Shown here piece by piece: positions 15,795-61,623 of a stretch of DNA of 64,000 bases. Under the pieces are notes generated by a model that saw only the letters and a program-made list of their open reading frames with translations, did not search any database and was not told where the DNA came from. The position numbers and the translations under genes are program-made. This DNA is from Anthoceros angustus (Eukaryota > Plantae > Anthocerotophyta), in contig MU008170.1 of the NCBI GenBank assembly GCA_010909165.1, positions 558,001 to 622,000 of the forward strand, given 5' to 3'. Within the stretch, counting starts at the first letter, position 1; each line of letters opens with the position of its first letter.

Positions 15795-16658
15795 ATGGAG
15801 TTCTGGGGAGTGGAGGTGAAGCCTGGCGGGAAGAAGGTTCCCTGCAATCCCGGAGAAGACACATACTTGCACGTCACGCAGGTGGCGTTGGGAGAGATCA
15901 CAAACGGCAAAGAGGAGCGCGTGGTGATCCGGGTGGAGATTGACGGGAAGCAGGTGGTGCTGGGAACCCTGTCGCATGGCAAGTGCGATCAGATGAATTT
16001 GGACCTCATATTCGACAGGGAGTTCAAGCTGTTCCACAGCGGCACTCTCTCCAGCGTCTATGTGTGCGGCTACAAGACCGACACTCCTCGGGAGGACGAC
16101 TTCACCGACGATGAAGACGACGACGACGACGACGAGGATGACCTGGACGACGAGAAGGTTCCGCAGGCCGTGCCCTTGGCTAAGGCCAAGCCGGAGGCGG
16201 CTAAGGCAGGGGCTAAGGCATCTGCTCCGGTAGCTGCGCAGGATGAGGACGACGACATGGATGAGGATGACGACGAGGATGCGGATGAGGACGGCGAGGA
16301 AGAGGAGTCGTCTGAGGAAGAGGAAGAGCCGAAGCATGAGTCGAAGAAGAGAGCATTCCCTGCTTCCACAAACAAGGTCTCTCCGGCACCTAAAAAGGCG
16401 AAAGGCGGAGTAGAGACCCCTGAAGTGAAGGTGAAGGGCCCGGTGCCGCAGCCTGCCAGCGATGGCAAGGCAGCAGGTCAAAAGGGGGGCAAGAAGGGAG
16501 CCGACGGCGCCGCCAAGGATGCCAAGGATGCAAAGGACACGAAGACGAAGAAGTCCCCGGGTAAGTTGGCAGGGGACTATAAATGTGCATCCTGTTCTAA
16601 GGCATTCTCTTCCGAGTCAGGGTTAGCGCAACATACGTCCGCGAAGCACTCTTCTTGA
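15795..16658 (+). CDS. HDT: HD2/HDT plant-specific histone deacetylase/nucleoplasmin-like protein, intronless CDS
   Basis: Diagnostic MEFWGVEVKPG N-terminus, acidic tracts, Lys-rich region and C-terminal C2H2 finger CASCSKAFSSESGLAQHTSAKH. Confidence 0.95.
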   Translation: MEFWGVEVKPGGKKVPCNPGEDTYLHVTQVALGEITNGKEERVVIRVEIDGKQVVLGTLSHGKCDQMNLDLIFDREFKLFHSGTLSSVYVCGYKTDTPREDDFTDDEDDDDDDEDDLDDEKVPQAVPLAKAKPEAAKAGAKASAPVAAQDEDDDMDEDDDEDADEDGEEEESSEEEEEPKHESKKRAFPASTNKVSPAPKKAKGGVETPEVKVKGPVPQPASDGKAAGQKGGKKGADGAAKDAKDAKDTKTKKSPGKLAGDYKCASCSKAFSSESGLAQHTSAKHSS

Positions 16659-42611: not shown

Positions 42612-42844
42612 GCGTTAATCACATGGTTAGCGGGAGAGGGCGTTCAGGACATCGGGGCGGAGGGTAACAGACATACCGCATGAAAATAGACTTACGTTCC
42701 GAGTCCACAAAATTTGGTGACGGAATTCAGGACAAAATCGAGTGGAGGAGTGGAGATGGCGTCAGCAGTGAAAGCGAAACTGTGGTATCCCGCACCCGCA
42801 GCGGAAGCGGAACAAGGGGCGTGGAGAGGTCGGCGTCCGGGAGC

Positions 42845-43468
42845 ATGGCGGCCGCGGCGAGCCTGGCACTCCCCTGTGCGCCGGGCGTGCAAGCCCGGCT
42901 GGGACTCCGGGGCGGGAGAAACCCTAGAACGCAGAGCATGCGGGTGAGAGCTTCGGCCGCGGCGTCCACCGCGGAAGGGGCGACCTCGTCGGAGGAGGCA
43001 CCGGCCGTGGTGCGGCAGTCTCCCCTGCTGAGCGGCCAGGCCATCAAGCAGGTGCTGGCCGGGGAGCTCCCGGTGGCCGTGGACCACTACGCGCGCCTGG
43101 GCCTGCCGCGGGGGGCCACCGATGAGCAGGTCAGGGTCACCTACGGGAAGCTGGCGCGGGAGCTCATGGTGGAAGAAGGCGAGGACGAGGAGAAGGCGCG
43201 CGCTCTGGGGGTGTTGAGGGAGTCGTTCGAGCTGCTCACGTCCGAGGAGGAGCGCAGGATGTATGACTGGAGCTTGGAGCGGGTAGAGAACCGGGAGGAG
43301 CGGTATGTTTGGCCGCATGAGGCGGATGTGACGCAGTCGCGGGATTATGCTCCTGCGACCTACACTCCTGAGAAGGACGAGGAGGGGATTAGGATCACGG
43401 GGTTCATCTTCCTTGGGTGGTTTGCGTTGTCGGTGTTCCTCAGCATCTTCTTCAAGAATCCGAATTAG
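42845..43468 (+). CDS. ndhU: Chloroplast NDH complex subunit U (CRRL), J-like protein, intronless
   Basis: Transit-like N-terminus, VDHYARLGL, EERRMYDWSL, ERYVWPHEAD, C-terminal TM helix, no HPD. Confidence 0.85.
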   Translation: MAAAASLALPCAPGVQARLGLRGGRNPRTQSMRVRASAAASTAEGATSSEEAPAVVRQSPLLSGQAIKQVLAGELPVAVDHYARLGLPRGATDEQVRVTYGKLARELMVEEGEDEEKARALGVLRESFELLTSEEERRMYDWSLERVENREERYVWPHEADVTQSRDYAPATYTPEKDEEGIRITGFIFLGWFALSVFLSIFFKNPN

Positions 43469-43721
43469 AAGGCAGGGGAAGCCAATGTTATCGTTGTGTT
43501 GTGCAATGCGGACATGGCCGTGCGTGCACCCGCTTGTCATCAGCAGGCGTGGCTTGTGCTATGTTTGTGATGCAGATTCTTGTTAGCTGGAAGCGTTGTG
43601 TTCGCTTCCTTGTAAAATTAATTCTTCCTCCGCTTGGTGCTCCAGTAGTCCTTGCTTTGGAATGCGCAAGCATTGTATGTATGTATGTATTGCACTGTTC
43701 CATCAACATCTAATTTTGTGA

Positions 43722-44075
43722 TGACACAGCAAGATGTATGTCCAGATTTTAAATACTTGTCTGGGCTGAGCTGACGAGCCTTATCTTAATGTAAACAAGA
43801 GGTAGAGTTCTGAAGTATAAGGACAGGTGTTGGAAACCCATATGCGAGAAGAAGGTCTGGCTTCCTCATGTGCTAGCAGTCTTGTGTAGATGTTGGTGGA
43901 ACAAACATCTACTTTTCTGGTGACACAGCAAGATGAAACACAAGTACAGATTTCAGAAAGTTTTCTGCGCTGGGCTGAGGGCCCTCATCTTGATGCAAAA
44001 CAAGAGGTGAAGAATTCTGAAGTCTAAAAACAGGCATTCGAAACCCATATGCGAGCAGCATGTCTGGCTTCGTCG
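43722..44075. repeat. Diverged direct duplication (~150 bp, two copies) between the NdhU and Borealin 3' ends
   Basis: tgacacagcaagatg...ctgggctgag...gaaacccatatgcgag...gtctggcttc at ~43722 and ~43921. Confidence 0.75.
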
Positions 44076-44131
44076 CTCTGGTTATAAGTCTCTTCCACCA
44101 ACGCACAGCGCGTGTCTTGTCTTTCTGTCCA

Positions 44132-45319
44132 TCAGTAGTGTCCAAGGGGCGAGCCATTGATGGACATGAGCAACTCTCCTCGCTGAGGCCTTCTCTCCGA
44201 CCTCGGGGTGACTCCACACCGGGAAGGTTGCAGAGCAGCAGCGAGAGGAGGACCTGTGAAGAGGCTGCCTCTTCTCCACATGGCGGGAGTGGCCATGGTA
44301 GGACTGGTGAGGGCACCGTAGTCTCGAGACGCCGATGCCTGGATGTAGGCTGACATGATCTCCGACAGGTCCCTGTTGTCTCGGTCACGGTTCAGGCCTC
44401 TGGTGGCCCACTTCTCCGCGCTGAAGTCTGCAGCTGCCATGGCTGGGGCAGGAGTGGGCACCACATTTCCCTGCACCTGCTGCAACCCAGCAGCAGCAGC
44501 AGCATCCTGCTGCTGCTGCCCTTCCGCCCAAGCGTTCCCGACATCCCCAGCGATGCTTGTGTCGAACTTCCTAATCTCCAAGGACCCGTCCTCCCGCTCC
44601 ACGATTCCGCAATGGGTGCAGTACTTTTCCACAAACTCCACCAGCGGCATCCTGAGCTGGGCTGCCGAGAACTTGGCCTGCTGCAGCTTCAGCTGGGCCA
44701 TCACCGCCGGGAGCTGCATCTCCAGCGTGGCCTTGAGGGCCTCACACCGGAACTCCACCTCGGAGTTGATGCTCTCGCTCACCCGGCGGATCAGCTCCAG
44801 CCGCTCCTCGTAGGTGGAAGGAAGCCCTGGCACCTCCTTCAGCGGAGGCCTGGCAGGTAAGTCCACTCTGCCCGAGCTCTTGGGCGGCGGCTCCGCCTTG
44901 TCTCCTACAACTCCATCCTCCCCAGCAGCCCCCTCCTGCACCGCTCTGCGGCCTCTCCCTTTCTTGGGTTTGGGAGCAGAACCCTCCTCCGATTCCAACA
45001 TCACCTGCAAACCAGCCCCGTTTCCATCCTTCCCATGCCCATCTCCATTCCCGGCATCCTCCTCCTTCGCCTGCTTCTCCCCCAACCTTGTCCTCCTCGT
45101 CGCCCTCCCCGAACCCGCAGCAAGCCCTACAAACCCATCTTTCTCCCCCGCGTTGGCATCCACGTCCACCAGCGGCCTCCTCCTGGCCGCCTGCTTCCTG
45201 GTCACCCGCCCCCCAGCCTCCCCTGCTCCTTCTCCTGCCGCCTCATCCTTCGCCGGGGAGCTCGAGGAATCGGCTCCCTTCCTCGGCCTCCCCCGCTTCT
45301 TGCCACCCGCTTTCTCCAT
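44132..45319 (-). CDS. BORR: Borealin-related chromosomal passenger complex subunit, intronless, with long N-terminal extension
   Basis: Helical segment ...KFSAAQLRMPLVEFVEKYC and C-terminal RRPQRGELLMSINGSPLG, as in Borealin/CDCA8. AT-hook-like KKRGRPRK at the N-terminus. Confidence 0.85.
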   Translation of the reverse strand: MEKAGGKKRGRPRKGADSSSSPAKDEAAGEGAGEAGGRVTRKQAARRRPLVDVDANAGEKDGFVGLAAGSGRATRRTRLGEKQAKEEDAGNGDGHGKDGNGAGLQVMLESEEGSAPKPKKGRGRRAVQEGAAGEDGVVGDKAEPPPKSSGRVDLPARPPLKEVPGLPSTYEERLELIRRVSESINSEVEFRCEALKATLEMQLPAVMAQLKLQQAKFSAAQLRMPLVEFVEKYCTHCGIVEREDGSLEIRKFDTSIAGDVGNAWAEGQQQQDAAAAAGLQQVQGNVVPTPAPAMAAADFSAEKWATRGLNRDRDNRDLSEIMSAYIQASASRDYGALTSPTMATPAMWRRGSLFTGPPLAAALQPSRCGVTPRSERRPQRGELLMSINGSPLGHY

Positions 45320-45384
45320 CTTCCTCTTCCTTCTGTCAAAGAACCACAACCCAACACCACTACACCTCCATCCAGCCTACCCAC

Positions 45385-45657
45385 CTACCCTGTTTCCTGC
45401 TCGAACTCTCCAGCATCGCTATCCTCTTCCACATTGTCAGCCTCTTCGTCCTCCGCATCCGGCTCGTACTCGTCCTGGTCGTTGTCTGGCGGGATTTTGC
45501 CGATGACTACAATGCCGTCGCAGGCCGTCTTGATCTCGTTGAACTTCTCATCCAGCTCGGACTCCTGCTGAGCCAGAATAGCCTCATCGCTGTCCTGGAT
45601 CTGCCAGTACGAGGAGTGGTCGACGGTGGGCGGCACCAGACGGGGAAACATCAACAT
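45385..45657 (-). CDS. APC15: Anaphase-promoting complex subunit 15 (90 aa)
   Basis: MLMFP...ESELDEKFNEIK...IVVIGK, then an acidic tail ending EFEQETG, matching plant APC15 as recalled. Confidence 0.85.
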   Translation of the reverse strand: MLMFPRLVPPTVDHSSYWQIQDSDEAILAQQESELDEKFNEIKTACDGIVVIGKIPPDNDQDEYEPDAEDEEADNVEEDSDAGEFEQETG

Positions 45658-45720
45658 GCCTGCCTCCTCCTCCTCCTCCTGTTCCCAGCTCGTCTCCTCC
45701 AACGTCTCGCAACTCTCCGC

Positions 45721-45750
45721 TTCCCGCGCCTCGCAGCCGTTCAAACGGTT
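45721..45750. promoter_or_regulatory. Two opposed MSA cores (AACGG) and an E2F-like ttcccgc upstream of APC15
   Basis: ccgtt at 45737-45741, aacgg at 45744-45748, ttcccgcg at 45721. Confidence 0.45.
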
Positions 45751-46226: not shown

Positions 46227-47429
46227 ATGGCGAGTCTTGTGGCTCCGAGTTGCTCTCCATCAGCTTCGAAAGTCCTTGTGAACAAGGATGTTGCTGAGTT
46301 GATGTCAATTGAAGCACATAAGCATGGTGATGGGTCACGTGGCTGCACATGGGCGAGGTGGGGACAAAGCCATCGGTGGAGCCAGCTTTGTTTGAGCCGC
46401 AGCAGCAGCAGCAGCAGCGGGTTCCACAAGTTGGGATGGAGCTTGGAAGCCTGTAGGCAAAGGAGCAGGAGTACCAGTGGCAGAAGGAACAGTGGTTTAA
46501 TGGAGATAGTTGCCAAGGTTGTGAGGCAGAGGCACAAGGAGATCGATAAGTCGGAGAAGCTCATGGAGGATCCTTATAACGGGCATGTTTGCGACGTGAT
46601 GAGCACCGGTGTGGTATCAAGGACCTCTGACGCGCTGGTGGAAATCAAGGACTCCAGAAACTCCACAGTGGTATGGACCATGGACATGGATGTCTTCCAA
46701 CACTACACTGGCCTGCCGGTGGTGGACGGCCGTGGTCGCTGCGTCGGGGTGTTCACTCTGGAGGTAAGTAAGTAAGTGTTCAGGAAGGTGGTAATGAACG
46801 GTCGGCAGCAACCTCCAGTGATGCCATCGATCTCCCCCATGTTGATAGGACTACGAGAACAGAGCCAGCAGCTGCAGAGACGAGCAGTGGGTTGCAGTGG
46901 ACGACAAGGTCGGTGCACAAGTAGGATTGCCGGCAGTTTCTCTGCTGGGTCTTCCAGTAAGGTAGGACAGTGCAGGCTGTGCTTCGTGATTGGGCATCCA
47001 TCCATATCCCTCGTCCCCTTCCTTTTCCTGCTCCTCTTCCTCCTCCTCCTCCTCCTCCTCCTCCTGTGCTGCTACCATGTCTTCGAATGCAGTGCTATCA
47101 TGTCAAGTCCGGCAATAGTGATCAAGGAGCATGCTCCCATAGCCTATGCCGCCGCGTTGATGCTCCAGAACGAGGTACGTATGTGAGCACCGGCCATGTC
47201 TCCCTCCTGGAACAGATGATATGTGTGCTACTCTACTAACTACCCCCAGAATGGATGGATTGGCATGTGACAGGTGCACCGCCTCCCCGTGTTGGACAGC
47301 AACGGGCTGCTAGTCGGCATCGTGACGAGGACAGACATCTTCGAGCCCTTGTCCGAGATCAACCCCATGTACCACGTCCTTGCCGGGAAGCGAAGGGACA
47401 GCAGTATGCCACAGTTCACAGACGGATGA
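46227..47429 (+). CDS. CBS-domain pair protein (CBSX-like, probably plastid-targeted; middle exon junctions unresolved)
   Basis: HVCDVMS, YTGLPVVDGRGRCVGV, AIMSSPAIVI...AAALML and VHRLPVLDSNGLLVGIVTRTDIF. Confidence 0.85.
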
Positions 47430-55172: not shown

Positions 55173-57823
55173 TTAGCATTGTTCCGCGTATATGTCGTCG
55201 AACTCGCCGTAGGAAAGGTGTTTCCAAGTCGTATCAACCAAGTTATCCAACTCACCCAACATGCCCGCCCCTTTATGCTGTCCTTCGTTGTTGTCTGACG
55301 ACACTCCTGCATCCCGCATCATCTGCCTGATCTGCTCCTCGTCTGCCTTCCTACCAGCTATAGAGTACATGCTAACCATCAGGCCATAAGCGGCGTCATT
55401 CGCTGGCTCCAGCCTGACTAAACTGTCGAAGGCCCGCCGTCCCAGATCCAGGTTGCCATGGCTCTGGCATGCCGCCAAGACAGTCATCCACGTTTCTGCT
55501 TCAGGTTGGAAGGGCATGGTGCTTATGAGGTCATCCACCTCAGGTAGGTTGCCTGCCCGACTGAGAATGTCGACCATGCAGACATAGTGTTCCTTGCCCT
55601 GTGTTATCCCAAACTCCTGATACATGTTCCGGAATATAGAGTAACCTTCGTCAACCAGGCCCGCCCGGCCACATGCTGAGAGAACGGAAACCATGGTCGC
55701 TTCATTTGGCTTCACCCCTTCCTCTTGCATCTGCCTGAACAACTGCAGGCCTTCCCCAGCATGTCCGTGCAGACTGCAGCCAGATATCATGGCATTCCAT
55801 GACACTACATTTCTCCCTGACAGCTTGTTGAAGACCCTTCGAGCTTCATTTAAGCTCGCACATTGGATGTACATGTCAACGATAATGTTACCTACCTCCA
55901 AGTCACCGCCCAGTCCACTTGTAGTGATCCTGGAGTGGAAGTGCTTCCCTTGCTCCACGGATGCTATGATCGAACATGCTTTCAAACAGCTCACGAAGGT
56001 TGTTTTGTCAGGTAACATGCCTTCACGCTGCATTTGCTGGAAGAGTCCAAGGGCTTCGTCACCATCCCCTGCTCCCACATAGCCTCCAATCATGATGTTC
56101 CATGACGCAAGATCTTTCTCTGACATGCCATCAAAGACTTTGACTGCCTCCTCTTGGCACCAGCACTTCATGTACATGTTGAGCAACGCATTGCCTAGCA
56201 CCTTGTCTACGACCAATCCACCCTTTGTAAGCTCGCCATGAATGCGCTTCCCCTCATCTAGGGCTAGAAGGATCCCACACGCATTCAAGATGGCTACATA
56301 TGTGAACTTATCTGGAGTAACACCCTCCTCCAGCATCTGCTGGAAGAGCTCAAGAGCTTTCAGGGGATGTCCATGACGGACATTTGCAGCAAGCATTTCA
56401 TTCCACGACGCCAGCTCTTTCTTCACTAATTTGCTGAAAATCATTTGCGCCTCTTCAAGGCTACCACATCTTGCGTACATCTCCAAAAGTGCAGCTGAAA
56501 GAAGTAGATCCTTCTCGAATCCTAAATCCACAACCCGCTCATGGATGTCCCTGCCTTCCGTCAGGGCTTCTGTATTGGCGCATGCTTTCAGAACAGCAGC
56601 ATACACGGAGGCATCTGGCTCCCCTCCTCGCTGCTCCATTTCCTGAAACAGCTTGAGAGCTTCCTTGCTTTGACCAAGATCTGCATGTGCCTTGATGATA
56701 GCTTGCCATGACTGTGTGTCCGGGTCAGACATCTTCTGAAACACTTGGTTCGCCTCCACCAAGCTTTCACACTCTGCAAATAGCCGGATCAGACTGTTCA
56801 AAAGATTCAAGTTTCCATCATACTTGCCACTCGCAAGCAATCTTTGCATTCGCTTGCCAGCTGCCAAATTCTTGCTTTTGATACCCTCTTCCAGCAACCT
56901 TAACTCATCCTCTGCAGACCCTCCTTCGTCTTGACTCTCCACGTCTTTGAGAGGCTCACTGGTCCCTTGCCCACCCACAGCATTCTGCAAACCCTCATCC
57001 CCTCCTACATTTCCTTGAGGGTAGGTTTCACCACCGACAGGGCTGGAGGGATACAAAAAGAAACGAGTGAAGCACAGAAATTGAACGTCGTAAAAACAAA
57101 TCAACAACGACAGGACGAAACAAAAACACCAGACTGGCAGGACCGCCTCTGTTTGCGGTACAACACCTGGAATTCTGCCCTTGCGAATCCTCCGTCTTCG
57201 GAGCATACTCAGGACGATACTCCGCCCTGAAGACTCGGCCCGGTGGTGCATCGTGTATCTTCAACGTGGCCAGCCTTGCAGGTAGCCAGCGAGGGTTGTA
57301 CGGGTGATCAACCCACATTGCATCCCCTCCTTGCCAATGCCGAAAGTCTGGATGCCTATGGTCTCTCTGAAGCACAGCGCACATTTCCCACATGAGCAAA
57401 TCACAGAACAGAACTCTGGAACTCAGGAAACCTAGATACTGCATCCAAAATTCAGAATTTAGGTCGTTGATTAGGTCAAAAGCTCCTGCATACCTTGCTG
57501 TACCTGAAATCCCAATACAGATCAGGATTGGCGAAGAGTCTCAACCATAACTGCTCTGTGTACGTTTTCCTGTCTGCACCACATGCATCAACCCAATCCT
57601 GAGCTCCAATTTCCCACCGGGTTGCCTTGAAAAAAATCTGGCAAAAATGCCTGTGGTGTGAGAGTCAGATTCACTCACCAACCCTGACGCCGGTCGTGGT
57701 GCAATTCCGGGTCTGTTGACAACCCCATCCAGTCTCGCCAGCTGCAATCAGTGCGACTGCAGCACGCCAAAAGTCGAGACCTGGCTGCCGACCCAGGAAG
57801 GTGCGGCGGGCGAGATAGGACAT
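55173..57823 (-). CDS. PLS-class PPR protein with E domain and N-terminal OSB-type PDF motif (exons 57823-57679, 57555-57494, 57366-57167, 57042-55173; 758 aa)
   Basis: P/L/S repeats (NVVSWNAMISG, PDKFTYVAILNAC) and an E region (EHYVCMVDILSRAG...TWMTVLAAC), with no DYW. All three introns are GT-AG and phase-compatible. Confidence 0.85.
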
Positions 57824-58059
57824 GGTGCTGGGTCCAGCTCCCGCTGATCACCAGCGCTGGCCGAGTAGTGACGGCGGCGAGGCCATCCTTACTACCTTAG
57901 GACATTCATAACACAAAACGGGGGAAACTAGCGGTTCGAACCTTTCTGTAATCGGAGTTAAACTGGGCCTTATTTTAACTGCCGACCGAACTCTAGGGTT
58001 CTCTTTTGCCCTCCCCAGTCGCATCGTCTCGTCGCGGACGCCGTCGGAGCTCGGCAGCC

Positions 58060-58609
58060 ATGGGGAAGGGCACAGGCAGTTTTGGCAAGCGCAGGAACAA
58101 GACGCACACGTTGTGCACGCGATGCGGGAGGCGTAGCTTCCACATCCAGAAGGCACGCTGCTCAGCGTGTGCTTATCCCGCCAAGCGGATTCGGAAATGT
58201 GAGATTTGTTGGTGCTGAGGTCCTGCCGATGAGCTCGCCTCGGGTGTTCAGGAATCTTGAATTCTGAAGATTTTTGTTTTTCCTGGTGCGCGCAGACAAC
58301 TGGAGTGTGAAAGCCATTCGCCGGAAAACCACCGGCACAGGGCGTATGAGGCACCTCCGCCACCTACCTCGGCTTTTTAAGAACAACTTCAGAGAAGGTT
58401 AGCCCTGGGTGCCTCTTTTGATACGTAATTTTTTGAGCTGTGGTGCGGAATCTGAAACTTTTAAGAACAACTTCAGAGAAGCTTAGCCTGGGTGCCTCTT
58501 TTGATACGTAATTTTGCTGAGCTGTGGTGCGGAATCTGAAACCTTTTCATTTCTGTCGGCAGGAACTCAGGCAGCTCCAAGGAAGAAGGCTGCTGGGGGT
58601 ACTTTCTAA
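58060..58609 (+). CDS. RPL37: 60S ribosomal protein L37 (exons 58060-58198, 58296-58397, 58563-58609)
   Basis: [31 protein letters not shown]...[22 protein letters not shown]. Confidence 0.97.
58375..58542 (+). repeat. ~84-bp tandem duplication spanning the RPL37 exon 2/intron 2 boundary
   Basis: ttttaagaacaacttcagagaag(g/c)ttagcc...gaatctgaaac occurs twice. Confidence 0.9.
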
Positions 58610-59372
58610 AGGGGATGTGAAGTTGCTCCTTTGCTTTACAATTCTTTAGGGACCTTTGTGTACCTTCGGATGCTAAGCAAGCCATCCACTGTTTCGTCAG
58701 TGGTGAGATGTTTTGAGACGTCAAACAAGATAATTTGTTGTCTGACCCGAGTTTTTGGATATTGATCATGTACTTTTCGTGGTGAGCCTTGTATGCTTAC
58801 TTCACGGAACCTGGGAACACGGGAGTAGCACGGTGTGTTTCGGTTTTTGCTCGATTGTTGCACCGGTCGCGAGACAGCATGATGCATTCTTTTGAACACT
58901 TCCTTCCCCTTTTCCTTGTGTGCGAAATTGCCAGCTCGCCTATTCAGCTTTTGTTTTGTAATTTTCGTATACCCTCCTGAAATGGCCAGCGCCGTACTGA
59001 ATATGGGGTCTGTTATGTTGGCCGGGTGGTACGAAAACTACCAGTTCCTTAATTTTGCAGTGGCCTTTTTGGGTGAAAGCAAAGTTCACAACTCGAGTTG
59101 TTGTGGGACATCCAGTCTATTCTCGATAAATGGATGCTATTGGGCCAGAAAGATGCGTCCATGTCTCGTGGATGCCGGTAAGCAAGCCATAATGGAATTG
59201 GCAGTTGTGGTATACAGGTGGTTGATGATATTGCTGCTTTCATAGATTCTTCTGCCTCTGATCCCCATATAAGTTGTCGTCGGTTCCATTTTCAGGAAAT
59301 TTTAGAGCACCCTGGATTGAGGCTGACTTTATGTGTTGGGGGATGGAGGGGGGAGTTGGTTGATGTGCCTGA

Positions 59373-61001: not shown

Positions 61002-61623
61002 TGTAGGGGAAGTACAAGTGTGCTTCACATCCAGCTCTCCAGCTCTCTCCCCCAGCTCCCAAATTGCACAAATTATACAAATTCGTCGTCCCTTGTACCT
61101 CCCAAATTGCACAAATTATACAAATTCGTCGTCCCTTGTACCTCCCAAATTGCACAAATTATACAAATTCGTCGTCCCTTGTACCTCCCAAATTGCACAA
61201 GTTGTAGGGGAAGTACAAGTGTGCTTCACATCCAGCTCTCCAGCTCTCTCCCCCAACTCCCAAATTGCACAAATTATACAAATTCGTCGTCCCTTGTACC
61301 TCCCAAATTGCACAAATTATACAAATTCGTCGTCCCTTGTACCTCCCAAATTGCACAAGTTGTAGGGGAAGTACAAGTGTGCTTCACATCCAGCTCTCCA
61401 GCTCTCTCCCCCAACTCCCAAATTGCACAAATTATACAAATTCGTCGTCCCTTGTACCTCCCAAATTGCACAAGTTATACAAATTCATAGTCCCTCGTAC
61501 CTCCCAAATTGCACAAATTATACAAATACATCGTCCCTCGTACCTCCCAAATTGCACAAATTATATAAATTCATGTTCCTGGTACCTCCCAAATTGCACA
61601 AATTTTACAAATTCGTCGTCCCT
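61002..61623. repeat. 43-bp minisatellite with higher-order structure
   Basis: Unit ctcccaaattgcacaaattatacaaattcgtcgtcccttgtac, interrupted three times by gtaggggaagtacaagtgtgcttcacatccagc (61003, 61204, 61362). Confidence 0.95.

Follow-up and report, generated by a model that had tools for sequence, protein, structure and literature searches.

An APC15-Borealin gene pair in Anthoceros angustus as a candidate shared transcript for two mitotic proteins

Gene content and layout of the locus

The window analysed in this study, a 64-kb stretch of contig MU008170.1 from Anthoceros angustus, contains two adjacent open reading frames (ORFs) on the same strand, of which the first encodes APC15 and the second very probably a plant Borealin (Table 1). 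The coordinates and the minus-strand orientation given for both genes in a first-pass annotation held on recomputation. The genome is compact at this point, with one gene on each side at a distance of about 0.6-0.7 kb from the pair, a DnaJ-domain gene and a CBS-domain gene. The latter (46227-47429, plus strand; introns of 85, 131 and 99 nt) is divergent from APC15. Since the two ATGs lie only 570 nt apart, the promoter region of APC15 is probably bidirectional.

Table 1. Features of the APC15-Borealin locus (positions in the window)
Feature	Position	Strand	Remarks
MSA pair (CCGTT / AACGG) overlapping CHR-like TTTGAA	45737..45748	-	presumed G2/M promoter element
APC15 coding sequence	45385..45657	-	90 aa, without introns; ATG at 45657, TAG at 45387-45385, C-terminus EFEQETG-stop
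Out-of-frame ATGs in APC15	45587, 45551, 45458, 45434, 45416	-	five; region 45360..45587
Candidate intron, donor 1 (GG/GTAGGT), 56 nt	45333..45388	-	predicted; without counterpart in L001
Candidate intron, donor 2 (TAG/GTGGGT), 52 nt	45333..45384	-	predicted; purine-rich 13-nt remainder, junction at stop codon
Inter-ORF spacer	45320..45384	-	65 nt, G/T-rich
Out-of-frame ATG in spacer	45371	-	one
Borealin ATG context	45319	-	A at -3, G at +4
Borealin-like (BORR-type) coding sequence	44132..45319	-	395 aa, without introns; ATG at 45319
AT-hook-like KRGRPRK, Borealin residues 8-14	45278..45298	-	opens low-complexity N-terminal extension of about 165 aa
Borealin N-terminal-type helix region, residues 186-232	44624..44764	-	weak PF10444 match and predicted helix
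C-terminal motif with TP CDK-type site, ends SINGSPLG	44141..44215	-	near-invariant in alignment A1
U/A-rich stretch	43700..44131	-	first such stretch 3' of APC15; likely the 3' UTR of the shared RNA
DnaJ-domain gene	42680-43468	+	convergent to Borealin; shares 3' region

Directly 3' of the Borealin stop, a tandem duplication of roughly 200 nt, by now diverged, was observed (43705-44074; 83-91% in two blocks). Elsewhere in the window, an ORF with nucleoplasmin-like and C2H2 zinc-finger parts (HD2/HDT-type; 15795-16658, plus strand) is also without introns, and a tandem array of units of about 40 nt lies inside larger repeats of about 180 nt (about 61020-61620). A ribosomal protein L37-like gene (58040-58610, plus strand) holds in its intron 2 (58398-58562) a tandem copy of about 85 nt that covers the exon end and the donor. 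On the minus strand (55173-57823), a PLS-E PPR ORF with an E motif was found. The OSB-type PDF motif upstream of it is best read when an intron of roughly 125 nt is placed from 57493 on, and not with the 55-nt choice of the crude gene model.

Identity of the two proteins

The identification of the first protein as APC15 was confirmed by the Pfam family ANAPC15 (PF15243), which matched residues 1-86 with 46.3 bits (cut-off 27, E=5.6e-12). The protein is 83% identical to the APC15 encoded on contig L001, which is described below, and 61% identical to that of a moss. In 32 of 34 homologues the C-terminus is free and lies within a few residues of FEQE, and no plausible fusion with Borealin was found among 45 APC15 homologue matches. 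Three long matches were considered as fusions and rejected: P0012 is an RVT_3 gene model covering 73 kb, P0034 is an acidic repeat protein, and P0055 reads as an unrelated ABC-type ATPase. Plant APC15 is described as uncharacterised (PMC7943633). The proteins of the window were absent from the public collection, two metagenome scans gave no matches, and sequence searches of the PDB added no information.

For the second protein, the proposed Borealin identity is backed by the ESM features and the fold search, both of which rank Borealin first, while the Pfam score stayed under the cut-off. Nbl1_Borealin_N (PF10444) matched residues 186-232 with E=0.02-0.06 and 13.6-14.7 bits compared to a gathering score of 24.4, and the orthologue on L001 (P0001) showed no Pfam Borealin match. 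This test is insensitive for plants, as about 45% of the streptophyte Borealin cluster members in the Atlas carry the family. Among the ESM-feature neighbours of the window protein, ten of ten annotated clusters were Borealin (0.91, 199 shared features), and the ten nearest annotated clusters of the L001 orthologue were likewise all Borealin (0.89). The top fold match was a streptophyte Borealin cluster with a low TM of 0.28; feature neighbours and fold match constitute moderate evidence each.

The predicted model of the window protein comprises a 46-residue helix with high pLDDT. We take this helix region and the C-terminal motif to resemble those of Arabidopsis BORR. The long predicted helix, as needed for the INCENP bundle, together with the C-terminal TP/SP motif conserved in the alignment corresponds to the Borealin/BORR architecture (10.1101/2020.03.19.998880). 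BORR (At4g39630) shares with the window protein a predicted helix and a C-terminal region that is conserved and holds CDK-type sites, but it comprises 233 aa and at least three exons in contrast to 395 aa, no introns and a long low-complexity N-terminal extension (10.1101/2020.03.19.998880). The AT-hook-like RGRP in this extension is absent from the L001 Borealin. Altogether, ORF2 very probably encodes a plant Borealin.

The orthologous pair in a diverged relative

Word-seeded homologue searches returned, as the sole close homologues of both proteins, a pair on the Logan contig L001; conservation of the pair is read from this one contig. L001 carries APC15 followed by Borealin in the same order and on the same strand as in the window, both without introns and separated by a spacer of 35 nt. 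P0001 is 47% identical to the window Borealin across the C-terminal 231 aa. Between the window and L001, 60-64% of the fourfold sites differ, corresponding to about 1.2-1.5 substitutions per site, and alignment at the DNA level comprised the two coding regions only. The flanks of L001 gave no tblastx match to the 64-kb window. What is kept in both species is the closeness of the ORFs, the APC15 stop after EFEQETG and the aligned first methionine of Borealin.

In the first-pass annotation, the pair had been read as one transcription unit in which a choice between two donors gives either an in-frame fusion or a bicistronic RNA. The shared unit is strengthened by the retention of both genes 35 nt apart in the diverged L001 and by the missing U-rich 3' UTR described below, whereas the fusion part is not conserved. 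On L001 the two reading frames do not match across the spacer, around which no donor could be paired with an acceptor at non-negative scores, and the fusion and the donor switch are thus unsupported as conserved features of the locus.

The fourfold divergence of APC15 was as high as that of Borealin (0.62 and 0.64, with only 24 sites), so no extra synonymous constraint and no sign of an overlapping promoter can be seen in APC15 by this weak test. The 730 nt with promoter motifs upstream of APC15 in L001 suggest that the contig originates from DNA; if it were RNA, it would be direct evidence for a two-ORF transcript. The last 28 nt of the contig (3001-3028) look like the start of a tRNA-Arg gene; ARAGORN and Rfam called no tRNA at this position.

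Promoter and 3' end signals

The two MSA cores previously noticed upstream of APC15 are present. They lie on opposite strands with their starts at 45748 and 45741, about 80-90 nt 5' of the APC15 ATG, and only four close MSA pairs of this kind occur in the 64-kb window. In both species an MSA pair and TTTGAA precede the APC15 ATG by 70-155 nt, while neither MSA, TTTGAA, TATA nor AATAAA was found in APC15 or in the spacer of either species. As an argument for the linkage, however, the motifs are weak, and they were rejected as linkage-specific evidence, since the stand-alone APC15 of Marchantia (L003, 9695-9755) is also preceded by an MSA pair and TTTGAA. The Marchantia motifs suggest G2/M regulation of APC15 in bryophytes and point to an APC15 promoter of old origin, which would be available to Borealin. 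No MSA pair with TTTGAA was found within 400 nt in the moss, Chara and Nymphaea loci.

The 3' side of APC15 is unusual in its composition. In the 200 nt 3' of the APC15 stop the T content was 13.5% and 15% in the two species, whereas it amounted to 33-41% in the five stand-alone APC15 genes compared and to about 27% 3' of Borealin. The 1.2 kb 3' of the APC15 stop are purine-rich and U-poor and contain no AATAAA in either species. Since no U-rich 3' region follows APC15 and none occurs before the Borealin stop, the APC15 RNA most likely runs through Borealin.

The spacer and its candidate introns

Two donors in the spacer region lie 4 nt apart, which corresponds to the common overlapping GTNNGT tandem-donor pattern. 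The outcomes proposed for them were reproduced by computation: donor 1 removes the stop and joins the ORFs to a 489-aa open frame with the junction EFEQETG-RKRK-MEKAGG, while with donor 2 the stop stays and 13 nt remain 5' of the Borealin ATG. The donors score equally and face one fair acceptor. A NAGNAG acceptor at 45330 leaves the frames unchanged, so that donor 1 is in frame with both acceptors and the fusion would then comprise 488 aa. An equally good intron was obtained in 0.4-1.0% of spacer shuffles and an in-frame version in <0.3%; these figures are optimistic due to thresholds set post hoc and an approximate matrix. Donor 1 is partly made by the last glycine codon together with the stop (GGG-TAG).

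The T content of the spacer is 34% compared to 10-17% in the adjoining coding DNA. A yTrAy-type branch motif is absent from the spacer and likewise from four of the six anchored introns checked. The statement that the spacer intron has a size found elsewhere in the window was not confirmed, as the nine introns of the window that could be anchored by eye, all in conserved genes, measured 85-165 nt. The candidates of 46-79 nt from an ab initio intron finder were discarded as a size calibration, since this finder is crude and visibly misplaced at least one intron. The RNA structure of the spacer was not notable (z = -0.5 here and -1.3 in L001), and an IRES-like structured spacer was rejected on these values. 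Judged from the DNA, the spacer may be spliced in A. angustus, with somewhat better than even odds.

Translation of Borealin from a shared RNA

In both species the APC15 ATG is in a weak context with U at +4, while that of Borealin combines a -3 purine with a +4 G, an arrangement that suits leaky scanning. The weaker context of ORF1 compared to ORF2 is itself a weak argument, since +4 is set by the second residue of APC15. In addition to the out-of-frame ATGs listed in Table 1, four were found in the APC15 of L001. In both species, the resulting mini-ORFs comprise 11-32 codons and, as long as the RNA is unspliced, end 5' of the Borealin start codon (here at 45507 or 45360), so that re-initiation would be allowed. 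Splicing at donor 2 would turn three of them into in-frame N-terminal extensions of Borealin. The donor-2 junction sits at the stop codon and should therefore not trigger junction-dependent decay.

No depletion of ATGs before ORF2 was detected, with an observed/expected ratio of 0.88-1.08 here and 0.80 in L001 (P 0.37-0.69), and efficient leaky scanning is thus not indicated. For algal bicistrons, ratios of about 0.43-0.49 upstream of ORF2 are reported, and ribosomes usually re-initiate poorly once they have translated an ORF of 90 codons (PMC11291117). Read-through RNAs of Arabidopsis seldom yield protein from their second ORF, and a start of its own exists for most of the second genes (PMC9768141). 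Read-through of the stop codon was rejected, since in neither species do the two ORFs share a reading frame. As the mini-ORFs end early, the spacer is very short (35 nt in L001; 65 or 13 nt here) and the context of the second ATG is good, a mix of scanning past the weak APC15 start and re-initiation would be the likeliest route to Borealin, presumably with a modest output. Nevertheless, the translation route of Borealin is the weakest link of the shared-transcript reading.

Other plants and the origin of the link

In the comparison with other plants, no link was found in Chara, Marchantia, two mosses, a conifer and Nymphaea. Borealin was absent 3' of APC15 in the Chara, Marchantia, Nymphaea and both moss loci and in the conifer cDNA by annotation, tblastn, HMM and motif, with the weight on the annotations and the conifer 3' UTR, as the Borealin HMM was built from two sequences without a positive control. 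The conifer APC15 cDNA contigs (L010-L012) carry unrelated, differing 5' partners, chimeras which mimic bicistrons. An apparent PGK-APC15 bicistron in L011 was accordingly rejected as a library chimera on the basis of its adapter-like start and of three different 5' partners in the three contigs.

An intron near codon 38 of APC15 occurs in Chara, Marchantia, one moss (L005) and Nymphaea and is missing here and in L001. Arabidopsis BORR comprises at least three exons. Since these four APC15 loci are unlinked and contain the intron, and BORR is a multi-exon gene, both the link and the intron loss are derived. We infer that an intronless Borealin copy landed in the 3' UTR of APC15 and took over its mitotic promoter, and APC15 would also have lost its ancestral intron.

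Interpretation of the locus and alternative explanations

Based on the arrangement of the DNA, APC15 and Borealin are assigned to a lineage-specific shared transcript giving two separate proteins, with a probability of about 0.55. The G2/M-type promoter 5' of APC15, with its MSA pair and TTTGAA, would drive a single RNA through both ORFs. This RNA would be polyadenylated 3' of Borealin, and Borealin would be translated from it separately from APC15.

Because the translation of Borealin from a shared RNA is the weakest link of this reading, a nested arrangement keeps a smaller but appreciable share. Most Borealin would then come from an RNA that starts separately within APC15, with the spacer as a 5'-UTR intron, and the APC15 RNA would carry Borealin as a long and mostly untranslated 3' region. 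This would resolve the problem of four to five undepleted internal ATGs, and an intron ending 13 nt 5' of an ATG, which is typical for plant 5' UTRs, favours it as well. A second-gene start site was found in 202 of 271 Arabidopsis read-through loci (PMC9768141), and APC15 of the window carries one E2F-like TTTCCCCG at +9. However, this site has no counterpart at the matching place in L001, no MSA, CHR or TATA element was found inside APC15 in either species, and the 24 fourfold sites of APC15 carry no extra synonymous constraint, although the latter is a weak test. Two ordinary packed genes with overlapping ends, in which the APC15 poly(A) site lies inside Borealin, the Borealin start lies inside APC15 and no RNA spans both, would suit the compact genome with its CBS and DnaJ genes within about 0.6-0.7 kb. 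The U-poor, purine-rich 1.2 kb without AATAAA 3' of the APC15 stop and the spacer of at most 65 nt, which was kept across near-saturating divergence while the flanks changed, make such an arrangement unlikely.

The spliced fusion as the main product, a 489-aa APC15-Borealin protein linking the APC/C physically to the passenger complex, is the least probable of these explanations. Although donor 1 is no weaker than donor 2 by score, fits the frame at either acceptor and has an equally good in-frame counterpart in <0.3% of the spacer shuffles (post-hoc thresholds), donor 1 is in part a by-product of GGG-TAG and the frame agreement is a 1-in-3 event. Furthermore, its 56-nt intron lies below all nine anchored introns (85-165 nt), an in-frame join is impossible in L001, no long APC15 protein with Borealin occurs among the 45 homologues, and the free APC15 C-terminus and the Borealin start are conserved. 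The related proposal, in which the shared RNA would encode either two proteins or a 489-aa fusion tethering the passenger complex to the APC/C, depending on which of the two donors 4 nt apart is used, is improbable as well. If true, it would constitute a young splice-controlled physical link from checkpoint signalling to checkpoint silencing. A minor donor-1 isoform is perhaps conceivable, though doubtful, and would be compatible with the shared transcript.

Comparison with known bicistronic systems

The CDC26-TTM3 locus, which had been named as a plant precedent, is indeed described as a bicistronic transcript with a small APC/C subunit in first position (PMC7943633, PMC11291117). According to the accounts of Lorenzo-Orts et al. 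2019 in these two papers, the bicistron occurs in plants and green algae; an interplay with NMD is described in PMC11291117. As in CDC26-TTM3, a small APC/C accessory subunit forms ORF1 at the present locus and a longer ORF follows closely behind, probably on one RNA. The differences concern the length of ORF1 (90 aa for APC15, 65 aa for CDC26), the partner, which is a mitotic protein here and a metabolic enzyme there, and the distribution, since CDC26-TTM3 is conserved from algae to Arabidopsis while APC15-Borealin is restricted to one lineage.

With the exclusively bicistronic loci of green algae (PMC7896298, PMC11291117), the pair shares a short ORF1 in a weaker context, a longer ORF2, a tiny spacer and the out-of-frame arrangement. 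A very short same-strand spacer conserved in a relative, which serves as a bicistron criterion, was found with 65 nt here and 35 nt in L001, far below the median spacing of 212-260 nt in algal polycistrons (PMC7896298). In contrast to the algal loci, the observed/expected ratio of ATGs is 0.8-1.1 instead of about 0.45, and the signature of leaky scanning is missing. In Arabidopsis read-through RNAs (PMC9768141), neighbouring genes of the same strand are joined in a single molecule, possibly across an intron, as is proposed here, but the genes behind them are ordinary ones, each with its own ends, and the RNAs are targeted by NMD. Unlike these loci, the present one leaves no room for separate ends, and its arrangement is conserved in a distant relative.

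Neither APC15 nor Borealin is named in the main text of PMC11291117. Within an incomplete coverage of the literature, no paper linking the two genes was found, in agreement with the earlier remark that such a link was not known to be described, and no paper on hornwort nuclear polycistrons was found either.

Significance

The principle of a two-protein mRNA is itself already known, and the present locus may reflect a habit of the whole genome and not a device specific for mitosis. If confirmed, the locus would be the second, independent plant case of a small APC/C subunit heading such an mRNA, this time with a partner that belongs to the Aurora passenger complex, the other principal machine of mitosis, so that the synthesis of both would be tied together. 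As it shows no ATG depletion of the kind that explains algal bicistrons, it would offer a test of ORF2 translation in land plants. With both genes intronless and the link lineage-specific, the pair would illustrate cleanly how units of this type come into being.
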